Assembly (NCBI RefSeq): GCF_006345805.1
Contig: NC_043023.1
Coordinates: 8,122,001-8,186,000 of the forward strand
DNA: 64,000 nucleotides
Source: Octopus sinensis
Taxonomy: Eukaryota
Reading direction: 5' to 3'
This document shows positions 14,820 to 51,731 of the stretch, piece after piece. Numbering within the stretch: the first letter of the stretch is position 1; each line of letters opens with the position of its first letter. The notes beneath the pieces are model-generated. The model was not told where the DNA came from. It made no database searches and saw only the letters and a program-made list of their open reading frames with translations. Position numbers and translations under genes: made by a program.

Positions 14820-15592
14820 GTATTTGTGTGTGTGTGTATGTTTTTGTGTCTGTGTTTGTCTCCCCAACATTGCTTGACAACCGATGCTGGTGTGTTTACG
14901 TGCCCGTAACTTAGCGGTTCAGCAAAAGCAACGAATAGAATAAGTACTAGGCTTCCAAACAATAAGTCCTGGGTCGATTTGCTTGACTGTATGGCGGTGC
15001 TCCAGCATGGTCACAGTCAAGTGTCTGAAACAAGTAAAAGAGTAAAAGTTGTGTAGGTATGCCAGTCTTTCAATGCTTCAATGAACTCCGACCCTTGCGA
15101 ACATTGACATTAAACGGATGACAGTATTGATGTTGTAAAATTTGCAATGTTGAATTATTATGTCACTTAACTATTCTCTTTATCTCACTGTTTCTTTTCC
15201 TCTTTCAGAATATCAGATCATGTTGACATAAAAGAAATCTTGTCGTTCAGATGTGATTTCGATATTTTTATCAACTTTCATCAACTAAAGGAAGACAATA
15301 TATTTATAAGGAGCCTTCATCAATACATCAACCTTTTTATATTGATATAATCTATGACAAACAACGGCAAAATATTTTTCTTGTCTTCACTGTCTGGAAT
15401 GTAGAGGAGGTGATTGCTTTACAAGTTTGGATAACTTTACGAAGGACCTGACAGTTTTCACCTGCTAATTCAGATATTAAGTAAGATCACAGCTGAAAAA
15501 CATAGCATTAAATTATTCCCTGACAATACTAACTGAACTGAACACAAACATATTCATAGAAAAGAGAAAAAAACAATATCTTTGTGATATAT

Positions 15593-19454: not shown

Positions 19455-20150
19455 TAATGATGTGTAGGGCACTGCCCATGGGCTCATCGTAGACAGCATG
19501 AAGACAGGGACCTTCACTGCTGGATAGCTAGCGAGCTGGTCCAGAAGAGGGAATTCCGGTCGGGCAACATGAAGTCTTAAATCAAACATTTTTCTGAAAG
19601 GTAAAGGTGAAGTGTGTAGTAAACTTGTGTGGGTATACCAATGTTTCAATGCCTCAATGAACTCTGACCCCTGTAAACATTGACATTAAATGGCTGACAG
19701 TGTTCATGTTGTAATATTTACAATGTTGAATTACTATGTCACTTAACTATCCTCTTTATCTTACTGTTTCTTTTTCTATTTCAGAATATCACATCATGAT
19801 GACATGAAAGAAATTACTTCGTTCAGATATGCCTTTGATATTTTTATCATCTAAAGGATGACGATATTTTTATAAGGAGCATTCATCTATACATCAACGT
19901 TTCTATATAAATATAATCTATGACAAACAACAGCAGAATATTTTTCTTGTCTGGAATGTAGAGGAGGTGATTGCTTTACAAGTTTGGATAACTTTACAAA
20001 CGAGTTGACAGTTTTCACCTGTTGATTTAGGTATTAAGTAAGATCACAGAAGAAAGAAAGATTTACATTAAATTATTCTTTGAAAAAATTAATGCAAATG
20101 GACACAAACATATTCATAGAAAAGAAAAAAACAATATTAATGTGATATAT

Positions 20151-21514
<1,364 letters not shown>

Positions 21515-22935: not shown

Positions 22936-23333
22936 TTATATATATATATAAGGCTGAAGTTGTCTGTGTATGGCAGGTTTGGTAACCTTCAAATAACACT
23001 ATCTCCTCCAAGACCCTGCAGCGCAATTTGACCAAACTTGAGAGTATGATAGAAGAAGGCTTGCTCTTCCTTCCTTAGAAGAAAAAATTCAAATCGGACC
23101 ATGTTAACACCAAAAATTATTTACATCACAAAGGTGCTTTTTCTCTATGAAAATCCCTATTTTTTACGATTTTTTGACTGCTGTGTCGTCATTTTTCGGT
23201 GTATTTCAACCAGAAAAATGTTCAATTAAAGAGGATAACAAGCTACATAATGCAAAATTTTACTTTTCAAAAATTCCAATTCTAAAGGGTCGAAAAGAAA
23301 ACAAGCCCGAGCAACGCTGGGCTATACTGCTAG
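22936..23333 (+). mobile_element. Non-autonomous Helitron
   Basis: 3' hairpin GCCCGAGCAACGCTGGGC (23305-23322) followed by CTAG|T. Confidence 0.78.
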
Positions 23334-23483
23334 TATATATATAAAGGGCAATGTGTAAAGACTCCCTTCAGTCATTAATGACCATGGTATTGCATCTAGG
23401 AAGTTCACCTCAAAGGCACAACTCCAGGCAAGGTTCTTTTCACGGAAGACCAGCTGTTGCCCATGCACACCAGTCTCCCCTCT

Positions 23484-31400: not shown

Positions 31401-31779
31401 AAAAGGGCTCCAGGTTCCGAAAAAAACCCTTCTGTCTACCCTCATTCGGGGCGTAGACAGCTACCAACCTGAAGGACTGTTTACTTACGTGAGTCACATC
31501 CAGAACAACCAGCCTGCCTTCTGGGTCCAGAAAGACAGTACTTACCTGCAAGTCCAAGCTCTTCCTGATAAGGACTGCCACGCCTCTGCCTCTTCCTCGG
31601 CTAGGAGAAATAAATTTCTCGAACCCATTTAGAAGAGGCGAGAACACTTGGGCCTCGCTCATCTTGGACTCGGTTGCAATAGCTATGTCTACTCCATGTG
31701 TCGTGAGGTCGTTCAGGAAACAAATTTGTTTCCGTTTCGACCCCATTCCACGTACATTCACACAACCCAGCTTAGCCAT
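28404..31779 (-). pseudogene. Tx1 ORF2 (endonuclease and reverse transcriptase) with one frameshift at ~30430
   Basis: NVRG, GDFN, SYLDRIF, TDH (APE); SKAFDRV, RQGCPLSP, YADD (RT); CPRC..ETVQHAFVHC; the K(S/T)PG motif before LDGLPYEFY is disrupted. Confidence 0.9.
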
Positions 31780-31806
31780 TGTCGGTGAGAGAAAAAATAA
31801 ATGAAC

Positions 31807-33240
31807 TTACGGTTGAGAAAGGGAGCATGACAGTTTGAATCTGCCCGCTTCCCCTTCTTCCTCCCTTGTGGTCGTGGCTGCAGGGCTCTTAACCGGCGTT
31901 GCCACCGGGCTCTGGGTGGGTGTGGTTGCCGGGGTTATAACGAGTTTACCCTCCAGAACTTCTTTTGTCACATCTCTAATCAGTCTGTTCTTTAGATGTT
32001 CTTGAAGAACTTCCTCCTTCCACTCGTCTTCCTTTATTTTCGCGAAGCGAGTGGTTGCTTTTATGTCTGTAGCCTTGCTATATAATTTAAATTTTGAAAA
32101 TTTATAGTATTTATATACCCTTTCATTTTTCTCATCAAAAGCGATGATCTTATCATTTTTTTTTAAAGACTTTTTCACATCTTGTTTTATGGGGAGGGGC
32201 TTGGCGAACTGTTTCCCAATGAAAACAGTGCCATGGGGGTAGGGCTGGGGGATTTGTTTCGTGTGTATGTCTGCGGTGCTTGCTGATTTTTTCCTTGTTT
32301 GGGGAGGGGAGTCCAGGGTGTTGTCTTTTTTTCTTTTGTGTGTTACCTGTGTGTAGTCCATGTGTTCGGTACAATCCGTTTCTGTTTCTATGCTTGTCGT
32401 CGTCTTGTTATCCTTTTCTGCCTTCTCCCCTTCAGTGTTTGAAGCACTTTGAGGAGGGGCTTCATTGGTTTTCTTCTTTTTTATGCAGTTCGAGCGGACG
32501 TGACCCTTCTCTCCACATTTAAAACATCTCGGTCTGCGTCCCTCTACTGATACTCTCATTGATGTTCCATCTTCGTTGAATATCCTATCGGGTAGGTTCT
32601 CTAATATCTTGTTTTCCGCCTGAACGAGGAGCTCCAGCGTCTGTCCCTTCCAGCGTACCTCCTCTTTCCTTCTCATCTGCAGAATCGAAATTTCCCACTC
32701 TATATTGTGCAGGACCGCTGCTGCTACCCACATTATATCGTACCCTCTCGGTATGTCCTCTATCAGCAGTTTCGCTGTTCTTTTTCCCATGTACGAGGGT
32801 AGCAGCACGATCTCATCATTTTTCAGGGTCAATGATGACACCTCTCTTGCTATCTCCGCCGAGTCAAAATGTGCCTCAACAGTAGCGCTGCGCGCACCTC
32901 GAACGACATGGCGAATTTTGTCCCACACCGGGGACAAGCACTTTTCGACCATTTCGTTCCTGACGTCCATAATTTTCTTTTCTTTGTAGCTATACACTTT
33001 ATATATGACTGTTTTCTCCTTTATTTCTTGTACCTTCGCCTGCGGCGGTACAAGTTTGACTTCGTTTCCTTCCATTTTTACCAAGTTCCTGAATTCGAAC
33101 AGTTGTTCGATCTTGAATTCAACGTCCATCATGGTTCTGCCTACCGCGGCCGAAAAAGACTGTTTGGTTACTTCCGTTTCCTTTAATTCACTTGTTCCCA
33201 TCGCGGGGAAGTCATTCTTCGACGCCAAGTCGAAATCCAT
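31807..33240 (-). CDS. Tx1 ORF1 nucleic-acid-binding protein (477 aa)
   Basis: Intact ORF with CFKCGEKGHVRSNC (Cx2Cx4Hx4C), 27 nt upstream of the ORF2 ATG. Confidence 0.85.
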   Translation of the reverse strand: MDFDLASKNDFPAMGTSELKETEVTKQSFSAAVGRTMMDVEFKIEQLFEFRNLVKMEGNEVKLVPPQAKVQEIKEKTVIYKVYSYKEKKIMDVRNEMVEKCLSPVWDKIRHVVRGARSATVEAHFDSAEIAREVSSLTLKNDEIVLLPSYMGKRTAKLLIEDIPRGYDIMWVAAAVLHNIEWEISILQMRRKEEVRWKGQTLELLVQAENKILENLPDRIFNEDGTSMRVSVEGRRPRCFKCGEKGHVRSNCIKKKKTNEAPPQSASNTEGEKAEKDNKTTTSIETETDCTEHMDYTQVTHKRKKDNTLDSPPQTRKKSASTADIHTKQIPQPYPHGTVFIGKQFAKPLPIKQDVKKSLKKNDKIIAFDEKNERVYKYYKFSKFKLYSKATDIKATTRFAKIKEDEWKEEVLQEHLKNRLIRDVTKEVLEGKLVITPATTPTQSPVATPVKSPAATTTREEEGEAGRFKLSCSLSQP

Positions 33241-33898: not shown

Positions 33899-34347
33899 TA
33901 CACAGAGAAGAAACACAGAATGAAGGAGAAAAAAAATGCGTGCAGAGGCTAGCGAATCAACATGGCGATCTGATTTCGGCCAGAAGTCAAAGATCAAACG
34001 TGAGACGCAAGAGCAAAATTAGGGGAGATAATAGGGTTAAATGACCTCGCTCCAACATAAGAGTGTGTGTGTGTGTATGAGAAGAGTGTGTGTGGGTGTA
34101 TGAGAGAGTATTAGTGCGTATGAGCGGTCTGGACGTGTGTATGCATATATGATGTGATGTGTAAAGTCGTATGGTGTAGTGTAGAGAGAGGAGATGAGGG
34201 AAGAGGGGGGAGGTAACACGTATAATGTGTATTTGTGTGTATGTAATTATTGATGTAATTAGGTTATAATGACCTAATTACATTTGTTTTCATTGGTTAA
34301 TCTAATAATAATAATTGTTTTTCCTCTCCTCTTTGTATAACTTTCAG

Positions 34348-34384
34348 GCAACACTATAGTGTGGTATCGTTGATGCTGGCCCAG
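34348..34384 (+). CDS. ANK-RING-DD gene exon a (ankyrin; QHYSVVSLMLAQ)
   Basis: TTTCAG|..CAG|GTTAGT; 37 nt; joins exon b in frame to complete an ankyrin repeat. Confidence 0.65.
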
Positions 34385-34696
34385 GTTAGTTAACAAATAC
34401 ATATTATATCCTCTCTCTAGTATTCAATATTTATATCATCAAAATACCAGTGAAATTCTGGGGGTAGATTTAATCAACTGCACTGCAGCAGCCTTTTAAT
34501 ATAGCAGGTCTTGGGTCTGTGAAGAATAATTATGTTGGTAATAACAATGATGATAGTAGTCGTAGTGATGACAGTCCAACTGACCACCACTGCTGATAGT
34601 GCTATCTTTAATGGTCAGACAAAACAAGATCATTATGAATTCAACCCATATATATCAGATTATATATATCATCATCAACCACTCTGCCATATGCCC

Positions 34697-34950
34697 GTGG
34701 GCATATGGCATAGTGGTTAATAGTACAGGCTACTAACCCCAAGATTCCGAGTTCAGTTACAGGCCGTGACTTGAATAATAATAATAATAATAACAATAAT
34801 AATAACATTGAAAAATACCTTTGGAATGAGAACATAGGTTCGAAATTTCCTCAAGACACCTGACAAAGGCTGGAGGGTATATCAGCCGAAACATTGTGTT
34901 AACAACAAACAAGATGAGGACAAATATCCATCAAATGTAAATAATGTAAA
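34697..34950 (+). mobile_element. SINE with tRNA-like head, (AAT)n tract and hammerhead-like module (34855-34900)
   Basis: A-box-like TGGCATAGTGGTT and B-box-like GAGTTCAGTTA; GACAC-CTGACAA-A-GGCTG..CAGCC-GAAAC-ATT|GTGTT. Confidence 0.6.
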
Positions 34951-35097
34951 TAATGATGATCATCATCTTTTAGTGTCTGTCTCTCATGTTGTGTGTGTGT
35001 GTAAATTGTTGGTGTCTGCATTTTATCTTGTGTCCAATAATTTATTTGGCTTCTTGGCTGCTTTTTCCCTCTGCACGTATGTATAAATGTGTGTGTA

Positions 35098-35150
<53 letters not shown>

Positions 35151-35559
35151 ACCCAGAAAGAGAGTTACTCTTGTCAGACACATTGCACACTCAGATTATG
35201 CAGCAGAGATAAGTTAAAGGTCCTTGTCCCCAGCAACAAAGCTAAATGTGGGCATGCTGAACTCAGTCCCTATTGCTTCGTTAATCCATTATCATCAGTA
35301 CATGATGAATCAACTTCCCTTCTCCTCTCTCCCTGCCTAACTCAATGGATTAACTACCCTTACTGTATTTGTCTACCTAACTTATTTACCTGTATTTGTA
35401 TTAACATGGCTTTGCATGAATGCCGGGATGCAACACCCTTCACTGTTGGTGGTGACGATACCTGATTAACTCCTCTTTACAGGTATTCATACTAACACCT
35501 CTGTGCTAATACCAGCACAACACCCACGTCCAGTGGTGTTAGCAAGCGTTACATGAATG

Positions 35560-36300
35560 ATGCAGGATTAAATGCAAGGACAACTGCTAATGACATGCTG
35601 GCAGGAAAATGCTAATAACAACTTTTTCAGATGCTGATAGCTGCAGCCAACTGAAGGGCTACTTCTATGACACTTCAAAGATAAATGACCGTGACCTTCG
35701 TGGCTGGTGATTTCAATGGACGTGTTGGGCAGCACCCAGGTATCTTCCAAGGGGTACATGGTGGGACACAGAATTGTGGGAACAAAAACCATAGCCACCA
35801 TGTACACCATGGAAGCCCCCTGCATGTTGCCCAACGTGCCCATTGAAGTCGCCAGCCACAAAGAGAAGGTCCCTGTCATTCATTGATGAGGTAGTCTGCA
35901 AGAGGGTGTCATAAAATCAGTCTTTCTGTTCATCAGGTAGCCCTGGCTGAGGGTCATAGGCTGAGATAATGGTTGCTAATCCATGTTGCAGCACTAATCT
36001 AAACTTAAGTATTCCATCACAGACTCTGACTATCTTGATTATCTTATCAGCCCATTTCTCTGCAAGAAGTATACTCATGCCCCCGACTCCATCAGTGTGC
36101 CCTACCCAGAAAATCTTATACTTATGTTCTTTGCCTGTGAGGAACCTAGCAGAACTTCCTCTCCACCTTCTTGGATGCAGCACAAATCTACACGTCTCTG
36201 TTCAAGCATGTTAACATTCTCACCAGACCTACCTTTCAATGTGCCGATGTTGAGAGTACTAACCCTGAGGGTGTTGAAGATATGGGTCCATGAGACCCTG
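35560..36300 (-). pseudogene. Decayed RTE-clade LINE endonuclease
   Basis: TLNIGTL, DLCCIQE, IISAYDPQ.G, VAGDFNGHVG across shifted frames. Confidence 0.8.
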
Positions 36301-36470
36301 GGATGGGGGACAGCGGCATCATGTACCTGAAAAGAAAGCTTGCATTTGGCAGAACCCATAAACATACAATAGTCTTCAACCTGCAAACACTACACCATCA
36401 TTTTATGCACTACATCATCACATAGGAGATAAACCCTATATATATAAATATATGTATATATATATGTATA

Positions 36471-36502
<32 letters not shown>

Positions 36503-36515
36503 CACATATATATAT

Positions 36516-36570
<55 letters not shown>

Positions 36571-36968
36571 CATCGTTTAGCGTCCGTTTTCCATGCTAGC
36601 ATGGGTTGGACGGTTCTACTGGGGTCTGTGAAGCCAGAAGGCTTCATCAGTCCCAGTCAAATCTGGCAGTGTTTCTACGGCTGGATGCCCTTCCTAACGC
36701 CAACCACTCCGAGAGTGTAGTGGGTGCTTTTTACGTGCCACCCGCACAGGTGCCAGACAGAGCTGGCAAACGGCCACGAATGGATGGTGCTTTTTATGTG
36801 CCACCGGCACGAGGGCCAGGCGAGGCTGGCAACGGACACGAAACGGGGCGGTGCTGGCAACGGTCGCGAAACGGAAGGTTCTCTTACATGCCACCGGCAC
36901 TGGTAACACATCTGCAATTTCCATTGATCGATTTCGATTCTGATCGAAATCATTGCCATCATCCTCTC

Positions 36969-36999
<31 letters not shown>

Positions 37000-37842
37000 A
37001 TATATATATATATATATTTAAAATTAAAATCAAAATGTGGGTGAAAAATTGGATATTAATTTAATAACATCAATTTAAGACCAGTGGTCTAGCGTATAAA
37101 AAACTGAGATTCAGTAAATGATTTTCTGGAGAACAATTCATAGTGGTTGAGACCTATGCGGATCTCTTTTTAGCACAACGGCTTCCACATAGTGGTTTCC
37201 TCTTATATTTATGTATAAAATACTATTTACTGAATATATATATGTATATATTTATGTATGTATGTATTGGGATTGTATCACCAATTATTATGACACGATA
37301 CTGTTTACACTATAACCTTGTAGTAATAATAAAACATATTACGGATCAGGGTAACAACGACAATCCATACACAAGCCAACAAACAATGAAAACAACACCT
37401 TACGACTTCCTGCAATTAACACCTACTCTCTCTGGTCTCTCACTCAGACTGCTACTATTCATAGTCATTCAGTCAAGTCTGTTCTTGCATGCGTTCTTTT
37501 GACTCTCACCACAACATGTAATCGAGTCCAGGACCTATTCTATGTAAGCCTAGTACTTATTCTGTTGATCCTTTTTGCCAAATCGCTAGCTTACAGGGAT
37601 GTAAACACACCAGCATCGATTGTTAAGCAATGTTGGGAGGACAAACACAGACACACAAACACACACACACACACACACATATACGATGGGCTTCTTTCAG
37701 TTTTTGTTTACCAAATCCACTCACAAGGCTTTGGCCAGCCCGAGATGATAGTATAAGACACTTTCTCAAGGTGCCATGCAGTGGTACTAAACCCTTGAAT
37801 CATGTGGTTGGTAAGCAAGCTATTTACCATAGCCACTCCTGT

Positions 37843-37882
<40 letters not shown>

Positions 37883-38217
37883 AAATATATCTATATATAT
37901 GTGTTTGTGTGTATCTCACTTCCATAACATTCATGTATATGTGTGTGTATGTACAGGAATGTTAAGGATGTGGACACTAACCAACTCACCTGTTTTATGA
38001 ACCCCTTATTAATATAGCAGCATCATAATTCTTCTTTACTAGTTTTGATCTGCTAATTATATGTTCACTCTTGTTCTGCTCCCCTAAAATTTACTATAGT
38101 GAGAGATAGATATAGATTAGGCTGAAACAATCTGTTTAAGACCTCTTAATAGATTTATTCATGTCCCTAACACATATCCCATGTACATTTTCAATTTCTA
38201 TTTTTACTTCCACAAAG

Positions 38218-38430
38218 GATTCAGTGAAACTGGATATTGGGAATCATAAGAAAATAACACCATTGCTGGAAGCCGTCTCCAGGGCCCACCTCAGAATTAT
38301 CCGTAAACTTATTATACAGGGTGCAAATATTAATGCTGTCGACAATGATGGCAATAATTGTTTGCACCTCTCCATAATAAAGAAAGAGATGTTCCATTCT
38401 GAGGTGGAACCCATTCCCATTTTAGATGAG
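38218..38430 (+). CDS. ANK-RING-DD gene exon b (ankyrin repeats)
   Basis: AAAG|GAT..GAG|GTAAGT; 213 nt, phase 0-0; TPLLEAV..H..IIRKLI.QGANINAVDNDGNNCLHL. Confidence 0.9.
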
Positions 38431-39309
38431 GTAAGTTTTTAAAATTGTTTGTGAATATGTGTGTGTGGTTGGCATTAGAAAGGGCATGCAACCGCAGAAA
38501 CTATGCCAAAACTGGCAATTGGTACCTGAGCAGCTCTGCAGCTGCCCAGCTTCTGCCAAACTATCCAACCCATGCCAGCATAGAAAACGAATTAAAAATG
38601 ATGATGAGGAGGATGTGTGTATGTGTGAGTGAGAGAAAGAGAGAGATATAGAGAAACAGGCAGACATTGTTTGCTATTTTCTTTCACTCCCATCCACTTC
38701 TTTTCCTTTAGTATTAAATAATTCAGTTTCTCCTGATAGCACTAGTTGTATTATGTAACTAACAATATTCCATCTTCTTTCATCTTCAAAAGCATGACCA
38801 CTCCACTGTAAAGAAGGTAACCCGTCTTAAATATGTGTCATGTAAACACTGCCATAACTGTATGAAGGAGAGGTGACCAACGACAGAGATAAGTCTTTAA
38901 ATTTAAGAAAGAGAAATTCACAAACTGTTTTAAATATCGAATTTCAAGTTAAACGAGTTGAACTGTGTTAATTGCTAGAAAGCATATTTCATTAATCTTT
39001 TTCAAAGAAAGGAAAAGGAAAATAAATTCGTTTATGGACAATTAGATTTAAAGAAAATATATTCATGGACTTCGAAGAAAGTTTCTTTTATCAGTATGAT
39101 AATGAATATATAACTGAGATTATTCAAAGTTGATAATTAGGGTTCCAAATATTGCCAGGGCTTGGACTTTGTGTGTATACTGACTACAGTAATACCCCTT
39201 GCAATGATTGTAAAGAAGGGAGATGTGAGGAGAATGAATTTACATTAAGATGTGTGCACAAAAGTGTGATGTCACGAGATTGTATGTATGACGATGTAAC
39301 TAGACAGAT

Positions 39310-39457
39310 AGTCATAGAGGCCCTTTGTTACCAACAAAGATAGAAGCTCTCTGAACTTTGCCCTGCTTAATCTTATTCTAGCAGCTATGCTCTTGGCGCA
39401 TCCACCTCCACTACTGACTTGATTACCTAGATAACAGTAGCTCTCAACTACTTCTAG

Positions 39458-39460
<3 letters not shown>
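39310..39460 (-). pseudogene. RTE RT fragment
   Basis: VESYCYLGNQVSSGGGC.KSIAARIR..RAKFREL. Confidence 0.65.
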
Positions 39461-39505
<45 letters not shown>

Positions 39506-40519
39506 TTGTTTGTTTGTTTGAAAGACCTCAGCATCTATCCACTGGTAGATCTGATGGTGTTTATTGTCTGTTGTTGCAGAATTTAAGCAACTCTTTGATT
39601 CCCTAATATGTAACGGTCACTACAGATGTGTGACTGTATTTCAGACAGTTGATGGTCACCTATGTATTGTTGTAATGTCTTCTTTGGTGAGAAGAAGCTA
39701 CTCTAGCAGTCAATGACCCATTATTATAGGAATTGTCTATCAGACTAACAGTTTCAACAATTGCTTGACTATAATGTGCTGGTGTGTTGCCTCAACCACC
39801 ACACCAATCTTTACTTCACTTCATCAGCCAAAAATGTTTCTTTATAAATTTTGGAAACATTATTGATATGCTTGGATATGTCTGTCTGGTGTTGGTTTTG
39901 TTGCTGTGTCTGAAGAAATTATTATGTTCTTGGTGTTCTCTGTTCATTGTTTGTTGTTATGGAAATGAGTTGCACTTAGTGACCAGTGAAACATTTCCCA
40001 ATCAATATTTGGATTATCGAAATTACCAGTTTGAAAATATGGGTGACTGCTTTCATAGATGCAGATCTGAAGATGTCAAAAATCTGAGTTTTGATGGCAG
40101 TTTTGCAGATGGTAAACAAATTCAAGTAGGAGTATATATGTTGTTAAAAAAATACTTCTTGTTGCGACCAGTTAAAATCTCCATAAGGAATTACAGAAAA
40201 TCTTGAGTGACCATAGACCATCACACGACCCCCATGGTAATTAGAATAGCCTTTGTGTAACAAAATGTAGCTTGCCATTGTTTGTTGTTATGTTGTTGTG
40301 TTATATTTATATATACAATACTCTTCTATAAGTATTTCTTTTGTTATGGCCAGTTGGCTTTATCAAGCCAGTTGTAAAGATAGGTTCTTGTTGGTTTGTT
40401 GTGTTCTGTTATTTGTGATACTTGTTCCATTATATTTCCTACATTTGACATGATTTGCTTATCTACAATATATATTTGTGTAATATTCTACTCATCGTTT
40501 TATATTTCATCATTTGCAG

Positions 40520-40698
40520 TGCTGCAAAGAGCTCCAACTGGACATGGATAGGAGGCTCTCTGGAATAGTAGTTTTGAGTTACCTTGCCAGCCAAGGAGCC
40601 AGCTTATACCATCGTAATAAGAAGAAGAAAGTGACCCCATTGGACTGCATAGAAAATCAACATTTGAAAGAAAAATTACAAACATTTTTACAATCACT
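40520..40698 (+). CDS. ANK-RING-DD gene exon c (degenerate last ankyrin repeat and linker)
   Basis: TTTGCAG|TGC..CT|GTAAGT; phase 0-2; LSYLASQGASLYHRNKKKKVTPLD. Confidence 0.82.
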
Positions 40699-40824
40699 GT
40701 AAGTACTCACTGGCAACGCCAAGATAAACCAGGACATTTTCTCTTTTGTATATAATCATGTTTATATGTTTATTTAGTTTGAATTTTCCCAATGTATTAT
40801 TCCGTCATTAGTGTCTTGACTCAA

Positions 40825-41040
40825 GACAACAATAATGATTTCCAATTCTGGCACAAGGCCAGCAAGTTCAGGGAGGGGATAAGTCAATTACTACAGCCCC
40901 AGTTTTCAACTGGTACTTATTTTATCAACAGCAAGGTAAAGTCAACTGCAGCTGAATTTGAACTCAGCATGTAAAGGCAGACGAAATGCCAGAAAGCATT
41001 TTGCTCTGTGTGCTAATGATTCTGCCAGCTTGCAGCCTTA
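40825..41040 (-). mobile_element. tRNA-derived SINE, family 4
   Basis: Reverse complement of GGCAGAA(T)CGTTAGCAC..GAGTTCAAATTC; other copies at ~5065, 14395, 18390, 59010 and 60351. Confidence 0.7.
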
Positions 41041-41687
41041 AGACCACACAACAATAATAAGAACAATAAACAGAAAATACAGTTGTTAGTGGATCAAACG
41101 AAAAACACTATTTTGATGACATTCACATGATTGCTTGTGTTGACTGATATACCTCACCATCCACCCCTGACTATTTTAGAGCTCGGTGACCTCCATGAAA
41201 ATGTAGTACTAAATAATAAAGTGAATGAACCCATTTTGAAATTGCTATTTAGAAGTAAATAGGATTTATCTGTCTACCAACAATGTTTTCTCTCTCTCTC
41301 TCTTCTCTGATTCAATCAGTTGTCATGTACGCTTTCATGTGAAAATAACCTAAAACACACACTAACAATGTGTATGTCATCATCATCATTTAACGTCTGT
41401 TGTCCATGCTGGCATGGATTGGACTGTTTGACTGGAATGGCATGTTGGAAGGCTGCACCTTAGTCAGCCTTTGATATTTTCAGCCCACCCTTGTATGTGT
41501 ATGTTAATGTGACACTTGTATACACACAAACCTGCTTGTATGTAATTGTTTACAGTAGAATTTACGATGTACTCTTGTTGGTTACTGTTGTACCCCTTAA
41601 TATTCTGTACTCTAAACATGTCCACAACGAAATATTTTATTATAAATGAATGTTAATGATGGGATGTGTTAATATTTTGTTCTACAG

Positions 41688-41830
41688 GTGTTGGTTTTGT
41701 CAAGAGAAAAAGGCTACTGTCACACTCCATCCATGTCAACATACCGTTATTTGTCAGAATTGCTGTTCTCAAATGACATTTAAGCAATGCCCCATATGTC
41801 GACAACACATACTCCAGAAAAGTGGATTTG
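41688..41830 (+). CDS. ANK-RING-DD gene exon d (C3HC4 RING finger)
   Basis: CTACAG|G..TTTG|GTAAG; phase 2-1; CWFC..PCQH..CQNC..CPIC. Confidence 0.9.
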
Positions 41831-42678
41831 GTAAGAACATTCTTTCTTGATCTGTCTGTTGTCTCATTAACTTTCTGGTATGGAATAATGCACTTCATGT
41901 TGTAGTGGAGACATGCAACTCCTTGTTTGTAACTATATATGATTAACACTTGTTATAATGTTTGCCATCCTTTTAGACATTTTATACTCACACTCGTTAG
42001 TTTTTAGATGTGATTAATGCTAAAAGAGACATTGTTTTCTGACTCTTTCACCTTTTGGCTTTACTTTTGAGTTGATTCGTTTTAATTCGAACATGAAGCC
42101 TGGTCATTGCTCCAAGGTGGTATCAGAAAGTTCACGGACTAGTTCTGTAGCATGCCAACAGATGGCAGCACACCGTTTCGCGCACAGTGAGAGCTAGCAA
42201 TGACTTTCACGAGGCAGTGTGCTGGGTGACACCACTGCGTTTACTTCAAAAGTTGTGAAATTTGTGCTTTTGTGGTCATTTGTAGGCTGTAGTCTGCAAT
42301 TTTCTAATGGGCAGGAACAAGTAACCAATGTGAAATTTCGCGTTAGACTTGTCCAGCAAAACATAACAAAGAAACAACAAAACTAAGAGAAAAAGAGTGT
42401 TATGAAGTGATAACTAAGTGAGAGAATTTCAGAATTGTTAGATTAGTATATAGGATGTCTCAAGAGAAAGATGAGATTTAGAAAGGTTTACCCATTTTGT
42501 TCTGGTTGTAAATATTGAACTATTATATAGTAACAGCTTAGAAAGTGTTGACCGAAAGCATAGTGGTCACCAATTGACTATTGATGATATGAATGCCTTA
42601 CAATAATGGAATATAGATTATTAAAAGAGACAAAGAAATTTTACTATGAAGTATAAAACTTTGAAATGCTTATTTCAG

Positions 42679-43227
42679 TGTGTCCAAAGTTTGAAGAGAA
42701 AGCAGTCCAGACGGTTGCAGAGTCTGTTGGTGAGTATAAAATAACTGTAATTGATTTCTATAAATTTTACCTTCACCTGAAATATATTATTTGTGTGAAT
42801 GTCTGAGAACAGGTTCCATTCTTAGTTTCCAATTCTTATTTCAGTGTGTCCAAGGTGTAGAGAAAAAGCAGTCAAGACGGTTGTAGAATCTTTTGGTGAG
42901 TATAAAATAACTGTAATTGATTTCTATAAATTTTACCTTCACCTGAAATATATTATTTGTGTGAATGTCTGAGAACAGGTTCCATTCTTAATTTCCAATT
43001 CTTATTTCAGTGTGTCCAAGGTGTAGAGAAAAAGCAGTCAAGACGGTTGTAGAATCTTTTGGTGAGTATAAAATAACTGTAATTGATTTCTATAAATTTT
43101 ACCTTCACCTGAAATATATTATTTGTGTGAATGTCTGAGAACAGGTTCCATTCCTAATTTCCAATTCTTATTTCAGTGTGTCCAAAGTGTGAAGAAAAAG
43201 CAGTCAAGACGGTTGTAGAGTCTGTTG
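42679..43227 (+). CDS. Four 51-nt phase-1 micro-exons (42679-42729, 42845-42895, 43011-43061, 43177-43227) in a 166-bp tandem repeat
   Basis: Each unit has TATTTCAG|exon|GTGAGT and a 115-nt intron; peptides VCPKFEEKAVQTVAESV, VCPRCREKAVKTVVESF (twice), VCPKCEEKAVKTVVESV. Confidence 0.75.
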
Positions 43228-43647
43228 GTGAGTATAAAATAACTGTAATTGATTTCTATAAATTTTACTTTCACCTGAGATATATTGTTTGTGTGAATGA
43301 CTGAGAACAGGTTGTAGGAAAGAAAAGACACAATGAAGAGAAAAACAGTGTTATCAAGTGATAATTGAATGAGATATTCACAGAAATGTTAGATTATGTA
43401 GGCTGTCTTAATAGAGAGAGAAAAGGGGAAGAATTTAGGAAGGTTAGTCTATTTTGTGGTGGTCCTGAATAATGAGCTTTAACATGGTATCACAGCAGAA
43501 AGTATAAAAATATTAGCCAAAACCATAGTGGTCACCAGTTGACCATTGATAATAGGAATGTCTGACAATAATAAAATATAGAATAATAAGAAAAATAATT
43601 AAAAAAATTTAACTATATATTGTAAAACTTTTAAATATTTATTTCAG

Positions 43648-43719
43648 AGAGTTTAAATTTGGAGGAAAACCGCTCCCATAGCACATCGAAGAAGGTGGCA
43701 GTTAAGCAACAGCAAGTTG
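43648..43719 (+). CDS. 72-nt phase-1 exon, diverged copy of the death-domain first exon
   Basis: TTTCAG|..CAGCAAGTTG|GTGAGT; same length and ending as 47464-47535; no stop codon. Confidence 0.65.
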
Positions 43720-45899
43720 GTGAGTATAAAATAAGTCCGTAAGTGATTTCAAATTAGTTTTACTTCACTTGAGCATATTTTGTTTGTCAGAAGGACTGAG
43801 AACAGGTTCCATTCTTAATTTTCAATTGAAAAATTATCTGTTTAATAATTCTTTTGAAGAAATTACTGAAATTTAAGAGAATGCCCACCAAGGTTAGAAC
43901 AGACAAAAGTTAATGATGTCTTTTGGAATAGAGAACTAAAATATGTTATTTGGTTGGGGGTGAACAAGTGCTTTAACGACAAGGCCTTCGTTTTACATTT
44001 ATACTGTGTTTACTAATAAGTTGTTGTTGTTTTAGCAGGAGTCTCTCATAATCTGGCAGACTTACAATGAAATGCATTTCAAGTGTCAACATCCTGTCTT
44101 TTTGTCACTGATAGGAAATCTATCATTACATCCATTAAACGCATTGTCTTTATCGAAGTAGAAAACACTGGCTTGCTACTGAGATAGCCATTGCTTCTTT
44201 GTTGTTTTTCTCTCTCTCTCGCATTCTCTTTTTGATAGATACTAGCTGCAAGATGCAATAAATGACATTGTCCTCATCATTTATCATCTGATTTCCATGT
44301 TCCTGTGGAATGGATGGTGAGGGGGGGGGGTCACGGTCCAAGTCAGTTCTTATTAGCAGTTACTGTCCACCTTCATTGGTTGAGGATCATGTCCCACTAG
44401 AACATTCCAGCTTTCCTATGATGGTCTGCCCTTCCTAACACCATCCACTTTATAAAGGATCCTGGGTGCATTTTATTGTGGCACAAATACAAGAAAGATT
44501 GTTATGTATTCAACAAAATTAAACGTTCCTCTCTAACTTATGCAAAGAAATATCAGACATGTTGAAAGAAGAAAGGAAAGTAAATGAATTAGAGAGCAGC
44601 TCGTTAAGAAACCTTATGAGGTTACCCGGAAGCTGTTTGCAGATGCTAAGAGTGGCAGGATAAAATGTAATAAATGAAATCCAATTTAGGTATGGTTAGT
44701 GGTCAGTAGGGATAGCTAGAAAAGCTTTTTTAGCTATCCCTACTGACCACAATATATATATATTTAACTTATTTGTTTTATTTTTTACTAATCTGAAATT
44801 TCACCAGTTACAATCTGCTTTATTTTTGCAGCTATTAATCTTGTCCATTTCTGCCAAGGTGATGAACAAGTACCAGTTGTGTACTGGGATTGATGTAATC
44901 AATTAGTCCCCTCCTCTGTAATTGCTGGCCTTGTACCAAAATTTGAAACCAATATTATCCATTCCTGTTCAACTGTTTTCAATTCGCACACTACTACATG
45001 AAACCACAACATGCCATTACGGGTTTATTTCTGCTAGTTATAGGCCTGAATGTCCATGTTAGCTAACTGCAGGTTACTCTCATTGTCAGATGATTAACCT
45101 TGGTCATTACATTGTATCGTTTAAAAAGAAACAATGTTTTAGTAGTTGAATTAAGCTTTTATTATTATTATTATTAATTATTATTATTAACATTCATTCT
45201 CTGAGTTCAGTACCTTCTTGGGTTGACTTTTCATTTCATTCCTCATGGGTCAGTAAAACAATTACAAGTTACATAACATGTCAAACTAATTGACTTCATA
45301 CTCTCTCCTACAGATCTATCCACTTGTATTAATCGAAGAATTCATAATTAGCATTCATTTTTCAAAACCCTCGTTACCACACTATATTGCTGTCCAACTG
45401 AATCATCTCTTCCAATCATATCAAGTAAAACCTTTCGCTTTTCTGTATATTTTGGTGAGACTTCAGTTGGCTTTTTAGTGAGACTGATTGTTTGGTGTTT
45501 TAGAACGTGACCTTTAAACCAAGTATTGAGAAGACGACCCATCAAGCCAAGTAAAATTGCAGTCGTGGCAGATACTGGTGCCGTGCTGGTGGCATGTAAA
45601 AGCACCCATTGCACTCTGGGAATGGTTGGCATTAAGAAGGGCATCCAGCCGTAGAAACCATGCCAAATCAGACTGGAGTCTGATGCAGCCTTCCAACTTG
45701 TCAGCCTCAGTCAAACTGTCCAATCCATGCCAGCATGGACAATGGACGTGAAGTGATGATGATGAACTGGAGGGGCACATACAGGAGATCTACACTGATC
45801 CTAAGTGAGATAATTCATTCCCACTCATGGACAGTTTGAAATGCCCCCAAAAAACCATGAATCAAATCTCAACTTGGTGGTTTCTAGCAGAAACAATTA

Positions 45900-46930
45900 T
45901 ATAGCTGAGTGAAGAAGGCAAAAGCAAAGAGTGACCCAGGAGGTGATGGTGTATCATAGAAAGTATTGTACACAATTATGTTATAAGCTGTACTTAAAGA
46001 GTTGTGGCATAAAGGTGAAATGGTTGATGAGTAGTACAAAGCAGAAAAAAATTACTTACCAAAGAAAGCTGAAACAGAACTGATTGAGCAGTTCAGACCC
46101 TTTTCAATCTTGAATGTAGATGGCAAGATTTATATGGGTCCAGTTGCCAAGAGATCAGCTACACATCTCCAAAATAATGACTATGAGACCGAGAGTGTCC
46201 AGGATGCTGGAATTTCCAGAATCACTGGATGGGTAGAACATGATTTTTCAATCTGCAATGCAATACAAGACACAAAGAAGAATAAAAGGGATTTGAACGT
46301 TGTATGACCTGATCTGGTTGATGCTTATGGTTCTGTACCACACAAATTAGTGATGGAACCAATGAACTTCTTTTATATATGAGAGAAGATTAGAGATCTG
46401 GCTAGAAGCTGCTGTAATAATTTCAAAATGTGGTTCCTGACAGAAAATTTCACAACAGACATCGTTTGGAAACTGGAATTGCTGTAGGTTGCACAATATC
46501 AGTCATTTGGTTTGTGCTTGTTATGGAGATGTTACTTAGATCAGCAGATTGATCAGAAGAAATGGCTCGAGTGAAATCACCCAAGAAGGAATTTAAAGGA
46601 TGATATAACAATACTAACAAGAGACCAAAAGGGTATGCAAATAGTTCTGGATTAACTAATTCTTTGATCAAGAATGGGGTTTAAACCAAATAATTAATGC
46701 AGTCATGTGTCAAAAGGTTAGCTGAAGCAAGTGAAGTTCAAAACAGCATACAAAACCATGCCAAGGGTTAAAGAGAAACCTCTAAAATCTATTGGACGAT
46801 GGTATGCTACCTCATTGTCCAGTAAGAGTAGAGACATAGAGGTCATGGCACAAACTGAAGGCAATAGCTAAGACAACATTTCCTGGCAAATAAAAGATTT
46901 GATGCTTCCAGTTTGATCTGTATCCCTGCC
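45900..46930 (+). pseudogene. Decayed RLE-type (HERO-like) non-LTR retrotransposon RT
   Basis: KKAKAKSDPG.DGV, QFRPFSILNVDGKI, DL.DAYGSVPHKL, DDITIL with many stops; clade assigned from recalled motifs. Confidence 0.6.
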
Positions 46931-47463
46931 TTGCTTATAAAATCCTTGAGTATCAGTTTTTATGCAACATTTCAGATTTTTTTACTGCTATAATGTATGG
47001 ATGAACAATTAAATATAGTTAATAAGATTTTGTGAAAGCATAAAGTGTTTGGATACCTGATATGTTTTTGCTCCCCTCTGCCCACCTGGAAAGAAATCTG
47101 CTTCATTAAGAAGTCTTCTAACATCTCAAATACATGTGGCACATATATAAGAAAAAAAAATGAAAACTAAAAGAAAAACAGTGTTATCAAGTGATAATTA
47201 AATGAGATAATTGTAACATTGTTAGATTATTTAAGATGTCTTAATAGAGAAAGGAAATTGAGGAAGGTTAGTCTATTTTGTTGTAGACCTAAGTATTGAG
47301 CTATTTACCTGGTCCCACTGGAGAAAGCATAAAAATGTTGACCAAAAACAGAGTGGTCACCCGATGACCAGCGATGATGACAGGTATGTCCCACTATAAT
47401 AAAATATAGATTATTAATAAAGAATTTTTACTCAAGTATAACAGTTGCAAATATTTATTTCAG

Positions 47464-47535
47464 AAACTCCAAAGTTAGAGGAGAAGTGTCTCCAAGATGT
47501 TGCAAAACTGTTAGGAGTCGACTGGCAGCAAGTTG
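47464..47535 (+). CDS. ANK-RING-DD gene, death-domain exon 1
   Basis: TTTCAG|..GTTG|GTGAGT; ETPKLEEKCLQDVAKLLGVDWQQV joins GRNLGI of the last exon. Confidence 0.85.
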
Positions 47536-48842
47536 GTGAGTATAAAATAACAGTACTTAATTGATTTCAATAAGTGTCAGCTTTTGTTTGTCAGCATGAC
47601 TAAGAGAAGATCCCATTCCTACTTTCCAATTGAAAGGCTAGCTGTAAAGTGATTCTATTAAAGGTGTTGGTATTACTGAAACATCATAAAATAGCCACCG
47701 AGATTAGCGGGGTCAGTAAAATGGCTAAATTAGAGGACACAATTGATTTAATATTGTCTTTTGAGAGAGCAAATTAAGATATGTCATTTAAGGGTAAACT
47801 GGTGAGTTAATGATAATTTTTTTTTTGTTTGTTTTACATTTTTACTAAGTTTACATTTTGTTGTTTTTTCTTTGCAAAATGCTTGTTTTAATCAGAAATA
47901 CGATGGAAAGTGTTTCAGGTGGGACATCTCTGTCTTTCAGTTGGTAGTACAGGACTACATCATTAAGTGCATCCTTTTTTACATGCTCCTGTGTATAGTG
48001 AGTGGCATGTTGCAGTCACTCCAGTGTCCATTTAGTTGTGAACCACTCTTCACTGACATGTAATGCTTGATTGTACGTAGGTGGATGGTGTTTATGTTGG
48101 TGATTCCTCTCTTCTTTCCTGCAAGTTAAAACTCTCCTCTTTGCTTGGTTTAACTTAACACCTCTCTATTACACTGAGTAACAACGATTTTTGTCCATGG
48201 ATAACAATTGTTATTTCCTAGAAAATACGAGAATGGCTAGTATCTCCTTCAAACTTTGCTTTCGTCACAATATATACCTTGTAGACCTCACACATTTCAG
48301 CTGATGTTGTTTCACAGTGATTTTATGCTGTTGTCTTGATAAATTCACCACAGACACAGCAGAATGTATCTGCCAGATGCTTACAACCTCTTGATGCCAT
48401 CTGTGATGAATGCAGTTCTTGGATAGTTAGAAATAAACTGAACTGGTGATCTTATGATCCCTTTTTTTACACTGGTATCTATGTTGCCAGAACGTTCTAG
48501 AAATTCTTGGAAATTTTAGTAACTTCTTGATTATAGTTCTAGAAATTTCTAGAAAATTCTGCTTCAGTGACTCAGCACTGAATCTGTCTGGAAATAGGTT
48601 TCAAAACATTGATGTCCAGGTGACAAAAGCAACATTTGAAGGGAACAGATGTCCTTTCCTTTGATTTCTTGATGGAAATAAATAGGAAATAACACTTAAC
48701 TTATCAAAGACAACAAAAAATTAAAAGTTTGTTAAGCAGTGTTATTGATTTCTCTCTAAATCATGTTCTTGAACCATTCAAAGAGATCCTTATTATGAGT
48801 CATGAACCCATGTTGTCTACCAAAATGTGTTATACTTTTGTA

Positions 48843-50075
48843 TTGGGTCATCCCATAAGTAATGCAGTGTTTTCAATTGTATGAACTAAAAGTCGGAGGG
48901 GGATGGGATAAACTACCTGCATCAACTTGCTATAAAAGCAGTACCTTGTACTTATTCTTAGTGTGAGTTTTGAAGAGTGCAGTTAAATTTTAACAGTTAT
49001 TTTTTCAAAGCTATAATGGAAGTGACAAAGGAGCATATTCGACATATTTTGCTTTATGAGTTCAGTAAAAGCAACAATGCAACAGAAAGTGCGAGGAATA
49101 TTAATGCAGTATATGGGGATAGGACAATAAGTGTAAGCCAGTGTCAATGGTGGCTCCAGAAGTTCCGAGCTGGAAACTACAGCCAAGAAGATCAACTTTG
49201 TTCTGGAAGATATGTAGAGCTTGACGAGGACATCCTGCAAACCCTGGTGGAACAAAATCCCATTGTAACTAGCAGAGAAGCTTGGATTTGGTCATTCAAC
49301 CATTCATCGATACTTGCATGGTATTGGAAAAATCAGCAAATTGGGTCAATGGATTGCGCACAGAGTAAATGTGTGCTCTTCTCTGCTGCCATGTCTCATG
49401 AATGAACCTCTTTTGAACTGAATAGTGACTGGTGATGAGAAAAGGGTTCTCTATAAATACGTTATTCACCAAAGACAGTGGGTAGGGAAAGGAGAAATAC
49501 TGGCACTCCAGAATAAAAAAGGTCTCTACCCATGTAAGGTGCTGTTATCTGTTTGGTGGGATATGAAAGGTTTGGTCCACTTTGAACTTTTAAACCCTAA
49601 CCAAATGATAACAAAGGAGATCTACTGCGAGCAGCTTGAGTGGCTTAAGTCAGTGCTAGAAGAAAAATGACCATCTTTGGTTCCAAGATGACAGGTGTTC
49701 TTCGATCAGGATAATGCTTGGCCACATACAGCAAGGATGACATTCCAAAGGCTGGAGCAGTTTGAATGAGAAACAATTCCCCACCCACCATATTGCCTCA
49801 TCCGATTATCCTTTATTCTGCAGTCTTCAAAATCATTTGGACAGAAAAAAATATGAATTCTGTAGATGCAGGCAGAACAGTAGTGGAGGAATATTTTTCA
49901 TCACGGACAAGTCAGTTTTGGAAGAGGGGCCTTGCAAGTGCGCCAGATAGATGGAAGAGCATTGTAGAAAATGAAGGAGAGTATATTTTAGGTTAAAAAA
50001 GAACTTTGTTTATCTTAATTTTGAAGAATAAAAGATGTATAAAACAAATGCATTATTATTTATAGGATGACCCAA
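48843..50075 (+). mobile_element. Mariner (DD34D) transposon relic
   Basis: TIR TTGGGTCATCCCATAAGTAATGC with imperfect inverse ending at 50075; flanks TA and TG; transposase 49016-49996 with IVTGDEK, LSVWWD, DNA.PH, SSDY.LF broken by stops and frameshifts. Confidence 0.92.
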
Positions 50076-50979
50076 TGCTTTGTGTAGTTGAGATCATTCT
50101 GGTATCTTGTCTCTTTGTATTTGAATTGGCCCAGGTATGCCTAGTAGTACTGGTATTGTCTGATAGTTCAAACCATATCTTCTAGATATTTCTAACTCTT
50201 GATATGCTTTAGTTATCAATTATTCAGAAGAGGAGAAACATCACAGACAACTATTTCAGGCATTGACCATGGAATGTTATCAGATGGCCAAAATGGGAGT
50301 AAGGATACTAAATAGGATGTATAGTCCAGAGATCTGGGAATATCTTCAGGTTGAGCCAGTTCCTCTCCACATCTCTGGTACTATGGACATGTGTTGCAGG
50401 AACAAATGACAAGACAGATTCTTCAAGCCAAACCAATGGAGCAGGGGTCCTATGGGTAGATCACGAACTAAATGGTTGGGTAATAGCCATTGTCTTAGCT
50501 GTTTATGTTTGGGAACCCAACCAAAAGCTCTAATGACGGCTGCTTCTGATAGGACCCTATGGAGGAGATGCCTGAAGACTCTGTCTTTACAATCCTCCCA
50601 AGAATATTGAGCAGAGACAATGGATGGGTGGATCAAATGGATTGACTGTTGATGGTCTATATTGATTCTTTAGGTTCTCCATACACTTTTGCCTACACAA
50701 ACACTTCTCCTACCATCTGTTTACCATAAATTTTCGCAAGTGTAATTTTCAATTAATTTTCTTTAAAATCTTCACCATTTTCATCCTGTATTTCCACCTC
50801 TTCATTATTATAACATTCTTAGAAACAGAGAACAACATCTTTTATTTATTTTTTTATGTTTCTTAACTATTTCTCATTCACATAATTTATTTGTTACATT
50901 TATGACAACCTACAGTACACATCTTTTATGTAATTGTTAATGATTTTGAAATTATTTCTCATTGTTTTATGTTTTGCAG

Positions 50980-51185
50980 GCAGGAATTTAGGAATCAGAA
51001 ATATCAAACTGGGGAATATCAGGCATGACTATCCTTTTAACACTGAAGAGCAGGGCTTCCAGATGCTGCACACATGGTACACAAGTTGTGATCCAGAGAG
51101 ACGAACACTCAAAACACTCAGAAAAGCTCTTGAGGAAGCTGAATGCTTTGAGGCACTTCAATGTCTACCATCAGAAGAAAAGTGA
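50980..51185 (+). CDS. ANK-RING-DD gene, terminal exon (death domain C-terminal helices)
   Basis: TTTGCAG|GC phase 1; GRNLGIRNIKLGNIRHDYP.NTEEQGFQMLHTW..TLKTLRKALEEAEC; TGA at 51183-51185. Confidence 0.85.
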
Positions 51186-51678
51186 ACTTGTGTGTAAATG
51201 CTGCAATTGTTTAGTCCAAGGTCAACCTTGATTAAACAGAGACTCATGATCAAATTCCTTCCAGCCAGGACCCTCCTGACTTTATCCTTAGTGTAGGGAA
51301 CCCAGAATCACATTGTCCAATTTGATAATTGAATTGAGCAGGATTTGGCTACTAATTCTAGCAAATCTATCAAAAACATAAGAGATTCCCTTCCTGAATT
51401 GGTCCCTATCTTCTTAGAAATTAACTTTTCAAATAAAGATAAACTTTTAAATGTTTATTTGTTGTTGTTGCTGTGTATCCAACCTCCTCCCCATTATTGT
51501 GTAAACAGTTTTAATATCCTCTCAAATATTCATAGTTATCTACCTTCATTTAACCACACGGTTCCGGGTTCAGTCCCACTGCGTGGCACCTTGGGCAAGT
51601 GTCTTCTGATATAGCCTCAGGCCGACCAAAGCCTTGCGAGTGTATTTGGTAGATGGAAACTGAAAGAAGCCTGTTGTA

Positions 51679-51731
<53 letters not shown>

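Follow-up and report, generated by a model that had tools for sequence, protein, structure and literature searches.

The 64-kb window of Octopus sinensis DNA analysed here, which is AT-rich and carries many microsatellites and transposons, contains on its + strand a spliced gene whose predicted product joins ankyrin repeats (ANK), a RING finger and a death domain (DD). The locus is Octopus sinensis LOC115225502, which is already annotated. Eleven exons were found between positions 34348 and 51185, the same limits as those given in the preliminary description of this stretch. All positions refer to the whole 64-kb window, and the exon boundaries were located by hand and each of them checked.

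34348-34384, +: exon X1, 37 nt; an internal-type exon with an acceptor site
38218-38430, +: exon A, 213 nt, phase 0 in and 0 out; one full ankyrin repeat and the next helix
40520-40698, +: exon B, 179 nt, ending in phase 2; the last ankyrin repeat, which is cap-like (RLSGIVVLSYLASQGASLYHRNKKKKVTPLD), followed by a helix towards the RING
41688-41830, +: exon C, 143 nt, ending in phase 1; the entire C3HC4 RING and a tail ending in LQKSGF
42679-42729, +: cassette micro-exon m1, 51 nt, phase 1-1, VCPKFEEKAVQTVAESV
42845-42895, +: cassette micro-exon m2, 51 nt, phase 1-1, VCPRCREKAVKTVVESF
43011-43061, +: cassette micro-exon m3, 51 nt, identical in sequence to m2
43177-43227, +: cassette micro-exon m4, 51 nt, phase 1-1, VCPKCEEKAVKTVVESV
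43648-43719, +: cassette exon m5, 72 nt, phase 1-1, ESLNLEENRSHSTSKKVAVKQQQV
47464-47535, +: exon D1, 72 nt, phase 1-1; death-domain helix 1 (ETPKLEEKCLQDVAKLLGVDWQQV)
50980-51185, +: exon D2, 206 nt; death-domain helices 2-6 and the stop codon (TGA)

An AG precedes each of these exons and a GT follows each except the last, so that all 20 internal splice dinucleotides are canonical. The junctions are in phase 0, 0, 2 and then 1 at all seven remaining positions, and the eleven-exon join comes to exactly 374 codons. Exon X1 encodes (K)QHYSVVSLMLAQ, the second helix of one ankyrin repeat, with its first 8 codons (QHYSVVSL) lying upstream of the only in-frame ATG at 34373, where the RefSeq isoforms start (MLAQ). 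Translation from this ATG is identical at 366/366 residues to RefSeq XP_036370274.1 (P0273), the 366-aa 'uncharacterized protein LOC115225502 isoform X2 [Octopus sinensis]'. The eleven exons and consistent phases proposed in the preliminary description are therefore confirmed by the RefSeq isoform, while its 374-aa protein is correct as a count of codons in the join but should read 366 aa for the product. The gene model is far beyond chance, given the identity of its exons with proteins annotated independently. The longest isoform (X1) may add an extra 5′ coding exon.

The spliced protein was searched with Pfam at curated cut-offs, both as a 282-aa join lacking the micro-exons and as the 366-aa isoform. 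All three families that had been predicted from the sequence scored above their cut-offs: zf-C3HC4_3 with 42.8 and 41 bits for the two forms (cut-off 27), Death (PF00531) with 36.2 and 34.9 bits (cut-off 22.6) and Ank with 30.6 and 28.1 bits (cut-off 21.1; residues 26-55). No MIB/HERC2, ZZ, REP, BIR, kinase or ZU5 domain was detected by Pfam in the LOC115225502 protein. The ankyrin part is short, being composed of the half repeat of X1, the full repeat of exon A and the cap-like repeat of exon B. Only one full repeat scores, and the plural 'ankyrin repeats' used earlier was generous for about 1.5 repeats and a cap. In the RING, all eight ligands can be read from exon C with cross-brace spacing (C-x2-C-x11-C-x-H-x3-C-x2-C-x8-C-x2-C), and Cys7 is followed by Pro and Cys8 by Arg. 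The nearest solved sequences are those of cIAP1 (3.9e-8), cIAP2, MYLIP and XIAP, all of them active E3 ubiquitin ligases. Judged by these sequence features, the RING belongs to the IAP/MIB class (RING-HC, zf-C3HC4_3), as had been supposed.

An AlphaFold2 model of isoform X5, built on a 37-sequence family alignment, gave a predicted local distance difference test score (pLDDT) of ~90 for the ankyrin part (residues 20-133) and of 90-97 for the death domain (264-345), with values below 50 for the linker (182-259). The death domain modelled alone reached a pLDDT of 89 and a predicted template modelling score (pTM) of 0.80. When this isolated model was compared with the PDB by Foldseek, the first 35 matches were all death domains, with query-normalised template modelling (TM) scores of 0.60-0.83; they included RAIDD, FADD, ankyrin-1/-G/-B, RIPK1, PIDD, Fas, TNFR1, DR3 and Pelle/Tube, and CARDs appeared only at E values above 3. 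TM scores to the death domains of RAIDD, FADD, ankyrin, RIPK1, PIDD, Fas and TNFR1 were 0.65-0.83. In sequence, the death domains of known structure that come closest are those of PIDD (8e-6) and RIPK1 (2e-5), followed by TRADD and FADD. The confidently modelled fold thus identifies the C-terminal domain as a true and complete Death domain of the PIDD/RIPK1/FADD/ankyrin type, and the completeness asserted in the preliminary description stands.

A micro-exon linker had been described between the RING and the death domain, and its five exons are real; the linker they form, however, consists of cassette copies of the first death-domain exon. Tandem Repeats Finder delimits the following array:

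42665-43313, +: tandem array of 3.9 units, period 166 bp, 95% matches

Each 166-bp unit corresponds to one 51-nt micro-exon (m1-m4) followed by 115 nt of intron. Alignment with their flanks shows that m1-m5 and D1 have a common acceptor, TTATTTCAG, and a common donor, GTTG|GTGAGTATAAAATAA; the 51-nt exons m1-m4 align as D1 minus 21 nt, and m5 is a full-length but diverged copy of D1. It is from this common acceptor, donor and alignment that we derive the origin of the linker from copies of death-domain exon 1. Because every cassette is in phase 1-1 and has a length that is a multiple of three, any subset of them remains in frame. The RefSeq isoforms that we retrieved differ in nothing other than cassette choice, and D1 is present in every isoform seen. 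Their cassette content, given below, is that of the RefSeq models.

isoform X2: all five cassettes
isoform X4/5: four cassettes, one of the identical m2/m3 missing
isoform X6: m1-m4, no m5
isoform X8: m1, m4, m5
isoform X10: m1, m2 or m3, m5
isoform X13: m1, m2, m3
isoform X16: m4, m5, without m1
isoform X17: m1, m5

Within the array the exons have diverged more than the introns between them. Between m1 and m2, 9/51 exon positions differ as against 1/115 intron positions (Fisher p = 1e-4), with the amino acid changed in 6 of the 8 differing codons; between m3 and m4 the figures are 5/51 and 1/115 (p = 0.01). An older duplication can also be recognized, in which a D1-type exon together with ~350-450 bp of upstream intron is present in three copies, at 42363-42842 (m1), 43315-43859 (m5) and 47139-47631 (D1); this threefold duplication is older than the 166-bp array. 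The micro-exons m2, m3 and m4 (42845-43227) carry the motif CP[RK]C, and successive cassettes yield the pattern CxxC-x13-CxxC. Searched in isolation, and only then, the linker gave weak Pfam matches of the zinc-ribbon/CxxC type (Gin, 31 bits). It might be imagined that CxxC-bearing cassettes pair into small zinc knuckles. We rejected this reading and kept it as a low-probability lead, given that the linker has a pLDDT below 50 in the AlphaFold2 model and that paralogs often lack one of the cysteines. In O. vulgaris, one related protein (P0011) ends in VGEYKITVIDFYKFYLHLKYIICVND, which equals the translated intron after the micro-exon (42730-42806). This entry is therefore a model with a retained intron, and it terminates ahead of the death domain.

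The architecture had been called unusual and lineage-specific. It is indeed unlike that of any described family we found, but dozens of Octopus paralogs in RefSeq and UniProt have it too, and in the architecture search of protein collections every RING+DD relative whose source was seen came from Octopus. Among 5.8 billion proteins, a word-indexed search found 54 matches, each of which belongs to O. sinensis, O. vulgaris or O. bimaculoides. With a full-length family profile, 34 of the 120 listed clusters carried PF00531, PF13920 and ankyrin-repeat families together, and all 34 were Octopus, while every non-Octopus match among the 120 was ankyrin-only. A search with the RING-DD part of one paralog likewise found Octopus only. 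When 1.84 billion representatives were searched exhaustively with HMMER and a RING-DD profile, 1898 matches were obtained, the best 150 of which added about two dozen new ones with both RING and DD; 18 of these that were looked up and 4 named elsewhere were all Octopus, and two (P0071, P0076) had no source name. Among those looked up within the best 150 of the 1898 matches, no protein with RING and DD came from outside Octopus. The nearest non-Octopus matches were multi-death-domain proteins without a RING from starfish, amphioxus, coral and cod.

With family-specific hidden Markov models, the order RING then DD was found in at least 91 of the 284 retrieved proteins, and when their death domains are grouped at roughly 90% identity, about 52 clusters result. 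The order recurs in three species and as many kinds of entry, namely RefSeq XP_ accessions, A0A0L8 entries of O. bimaculoides in UniProt and CAI/CAJ entries of O. vulgaris. Full-length members have up to about eleven ankyrin repeats (family range about 1 to 11). In one of them (P0204) Pfam Ank matches nine stretches, and MIB/HERC2, ZZ and REP domains are again absent. LOC115225502 itself has the exon structure of its paralogs and more than 45% identity to them across cap, RING and DD. We take these proteins to represent a probably Octopus-restricted ANK-RING-DD family of dozens of genes, where 'Octopus only' applies within the collections searched, whose coverage of other cephalopod proteomes was not established. 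The gene and its relatives are already public under automatic names, most paralogs being labelled 'MIB2-like' in RefSeq and others 'MIB1-like', 'ankyrin-3-like', 'PP6 regulatory ankyrin repeat subunit B-like' or 'proteasome subunit 10-like'. Literature searches yielded context papers only, none of which describes an ANK-RING-DD family or the octopus genes.

In relation to its family, LOC115225502 is incomplete at the 5′ end. A blastn comparison with a paralog locus (L001, O. sinensis VCDQ01005398.1), which encodes a protein of 669 aa (P0205), delimits a colinear block:

34216..54720, +: colinear with L001 at 92-96% identity, introns included

The homology ends at 34216, that is 132 bp upstream of X1, and the exons of the L001 ankyrin array lie beyond this breakpoint and have no counterpart in the window. 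Permissive tblastn with long paralogs and blastn of L001 against the whole window revealed no upstream ANK exon within 34 kb; the idea that such exons are present was abandoned, as the searches returned nothing but X1 and interspersed repeats. In full-length paralogs, an internal exon is the homologue of X1 (...LAVQKQHYGVVSLMLAQ; ...LAVQK|QHYGVVSLMLAQ). These sequence comparisons are most simply read as showing LOC115225502 to be a recent segmental duplicate carrying the 3′ two-thirds of one family member. In the RefSeq model of P0205, a non-ankyrin stretch, LNFSYNKMASMPIKRTMMVTLLSIWQFKGK, is found right before the X1-equivalent exon (L001 13445-13534, residues ~284-313); the stretch LNFSYNKMASMPIKRTMMVTLLSIWQFKGK may be an ankyrin exon that was read out of frame.

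Each pairwise combination of these domains, ANK-RING, ANK-DD and death-fold with RING, is known, and it is the order ANK-RING-DD that is unlike any described family we found. MIB1 and MIB2 share with the octopus protein the succession of an ankyrin block and a zf-C3HC4_3 RING. The ANK structure of MIB1, 8v0e, is also the top Foldseek match of the whole LOC115225502 model, with an E value of 7.6e-4 and 29% identity over 114 columns, and among the phmmer matches listed no other natural protein aligns across residues 2-132. The preliminary description had likened the ANK part to that of Mind bomb, and this top match agrees with it, but the E value is about equal to those of other ANK proteins, the margin being small; the similarity of 29-30% is not clearly above that to other ANK proteins, and the cap region alone had no MIB1 match by sequence. 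The Mind-bomb likeness is therefore suggestive, a reasonable lead to the possible origin of the ANK part and not its demonstration. In contrast to MIB1 and MIB2, both the LOC115225502 protein and the full-length paralog P0204 lack MIB/HERC2, ZZ and REP, by which a true Mind bomb ortholog is ruled out. The octopus protein also has one, internal RING where MIB1 and MIB2 have two or three C-terminal ones, and an added death domain after the linker.

RIPK1, a death-domain kinase, is ubiquitinated by the cIAPs, whose RING is of the same class and which also contain a CARD. The octopus protein resembles cIAP1 and cIAP2 in this RING class, with cIAP1 as the best solved match, and resembles cIAPs and mollusc IAPs in having a death-fold domain and a RING on one chain; these families, too, expand in molluscs. 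It differs from IAPs in that no BIR is present and the N-terminal module is ankyrin, and its death-fold is a true Death domain (PF00531) and not CARD-like, placed after the RING and not before. Identity as an IAP was ruled out, as Pfam gave no BIR match at E up to 1. RIPK1 is also a substrate of vertebrate MIB2 (PMC5912950), and oyster cIAP-like proteins of BIR-DD-RING organization combine a death-fold with an IAP-type RING, which shows module shuffling in molluscs (PMC8917759).

The presence of ankyrin repeats and a C-terminal death domain is shared with ankyrins, ANKDD1, DAPK1 and NF-kB p100/p105, and the death domains of ankyrin-1/-G/-B are among the best structural matches, with TM scores up to 0.83-0.86. 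Unlike ankyrins, DAPK1 and NF-kB, the octopus protein has no ZU5/UPA, kinase or Rel homology domain, and a RING lies between ANK and DD. Lineage-specific expansions of death-fold proteins have been described in marine invertebrates (Kaur et al. 2021, PMC8195603). The octopus genes are similar to these in forming a large, taxon-restricted and fast-diverging family, with a death-fold adaptor shuffled onto repeat arrays and ubiquitin-system domains; the article treats TRADD-N and death-like combinations, and its passages searched contain neither an ANK-RING-DD family nor an octopus expansion.

RINGs of the IAP class dimerise to act as E2-binding ubiquitin ligases, homotypic assembly of death domains builds signalling platforms, and ankyrin arrays bind partners. 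On this basis we consider it probable, at roughly 60%, that LOC115225502 is an intact, spliced, protein-coding recent copy, truncated at its 5′ end, of a member of the Octopus family, and that its product would act as a RING E3 ligase tethered to death-domain assemblies. The duplication would have begun ~130 bp upstream of X1, and given this starting point the ankyrin array would have been left behind, with translation now beginning at an internal ATG (MLAQ). In the protein, the RING would bind an E2~ubiquitin conjugate, while the DD would dock the molecule through homotypic DD-DD contacts onto death-domain assemblies or paralogs, components of which could then be ubiquitinated. Clustering driven by the DD may bring RINGs together and perhaps activate them, since this RING class works as a dimer. 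A disordered linker of up to five D1-derived cassettes joins RING and DD. The short ankyrin stub would offer little substrate-binding surface, so that the product could be a minimal ligase or a modulator of full-length paralogs.

Several observations weigh against this reading. LOC115225502 is without the multi-repeat N-terminal ankyrin array that presumably gives substrate recognition, its start codon context is weak (T at -3, C at +4), and neither a promoter nor a first exon was identified for it in the window. Over 306 codons compared with L001 by the Nei-Gojobori method, synonymous divergence (dS) is 0.060 and nonsynonymous divergence (dN) 0.049, giving a dN/dS of 0.82; the introns of the two loci have diverged by about 0.057, which means that the coding sequence evolves almost as fast. 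This pattern is compatible with relaxed constraint and with diversifying selection alike. The RING shows 5 nonsynonymous and 0 synonymous differences from L001 and the death domain 11.5 and 0.5. Positive selection on DD and RING was considered and not retained, because counts this small do not distinguish it from relaxed constraint. Confidence in the RING model is no more than moderate (pLDDT 52-73 in isoform X5), and the splice from RING to DD is known from RefSeq models (XP_ accessions) and from its recurrence in paralogs and in three species.

For the short copy, the possibilities are a minimal ligase, a modulator of full-length paralogs and a gene in decay. The last of these possibilities would make LOC115225502 a truncated duplicate without a function of its own, transcribed and spliced only through the good splice sites that it inherited, and whose isoforms are splicing noise across the repeat array. 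The truncation at 34216, which took away both the ANK array and the original start, would fit such a fate, as would the weak ATG context, the dN/dS of 0.82 with nonsynonymous divergence about equal to that of the introns, and the presence of a long interspersed nuclear element (LINE) ~1 kb upstream of the breakpoint. Yet the open reading frame (ORF) runs over 366 codons free of stops and frameshifts, the splice sites are all intact, and none of the zinc ligands of the RING has been lost, nor any of the DD core residues that do not vary among paralogs. At positions that are invariant in nine close paralogs there is just one private change. The MLAQ start is, moreover, not a peculiarity of this copy, as it is also found in RefSeq isoforms at two other O. 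sinensis loci (P0007, P0008). We regard decay as rather unlikely.

A different role for an intact protein would be that of a regulator and not a ligase, which heteromerises with full-length paralogs via RING or DD as a decoy or dominant-negative form, the cassettes setting the length of the linker. The retention of RING and DD with only ~1.5 ankyrin repeats would suit this role, close full-length paralogs are located on the same 21.3-Mb scaffold, and IAP-class RINGs are established dimers. Against it, no catalytic hallmark recognizable at the sequence level is missing from the RING, which need not be inert, and we hold such a role to be unlikely. Finally, that the ANK-RING-DD join is an annotation artefact, an ANK-RING gene fused with a neighbouring small DD gene, appears very improbable: the join is known from gene models, the annotation of some family members lacks a Pfam Death match, the P0011 model ends by reading through a micro-exon donor and small DD-only octopus proteins exist (the RIPK1-like P0063 and the PIDD1-like P0074), but phase 1 is maintained across seven consecutive junctions, the bridging cassettes are copies of DD exon 1 with its splice signals, the RING-DD order is found in about 52 DD clusters from three species and several accession series, and an independent DD gene would have neither a start codon nor an acceptor-less first exon.

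If the reading as a tethered ligase is true, a Mind-bomb/IAP-type ligase and the death-domain platform that it modifies, which are separate proteins in vertebrates, would be united in one chain. To our knowledge, cephalopod innate immunity and cell-death pathways are poorly known, and the protein could provide a simple way to approach the coupling of ubiquitination to death-domain signalling in these animals, as well as a new case of lineage-specific death-fold expansion in marine invertebrates. A more far-reaching and doubtful proposal is that the whole family, large and quickly diversifying, consists of death-domain-tethered RING ligases for lineage-specific innate-immune or cell-death surveillance, with a logic like that of TRIM or NLR expansions. 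Variable ankyrin arrays would then serve recognition, and the combinatorially spliced D1-copy cassettes would be under diversifying selection (exons up to 18% diverged, introns ~1%). The cassette array is a clean example of exon birth by tandem duplication of a domain exon, where a single phase makes any combination translatable. For annotation, the Octopus labels 'MIB2-like', 'ankyrin-3-like' and 'PP6 regulatory subunit-like' conceal one coherent family.

The window also contains zinc-finger sequences and mobile elements. The three zinc-finger ORFs upstream of the gene are single-ORF genes or fragments typical of the octopus zinc-finger expansion. The LINE mentioned above has a GC content of 0.49 compared with ~0.35 around it. 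An interspersed repeat of 350-400 bp, probably resembling a short interspersed nuclear element (SINE), is present in many copies and in both orientations in the window and in L001.

6815-7903, +: C2H2 zinc-finger ORF with 11 zf-C2H2 Pfam stretches
15584-16750, +: C2H2 zinc-finger ORF with 10 zf-C2H2 stretches
20142-20771, +: C2H2 zinc-finger ORF with 4 zf-C2H2 stretches
28404-33240, -: LINE-type retrotransposon with long ORFs, comprising ORF1 with a CCHC knuckle, endonuclease and reverse transcriptase; it ends ~1 kb from the breakpoint at 34216
48977-49996, +: remnant of a Mos1/mariner transposase (HTH_48, 75 bits), split over several frames, within the last intron of LOC115225502
56554-58332, -: second reverse-transcriptase ORF (592 aa, RVT_1) in a GC-richer patch downstream of the gene
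1-346, 10193-10537, 11480-11857, 22937-23345, 37522-37841, 51552-51946, 53170-53566 and 58559-58972: copies of the SINE-like repeat

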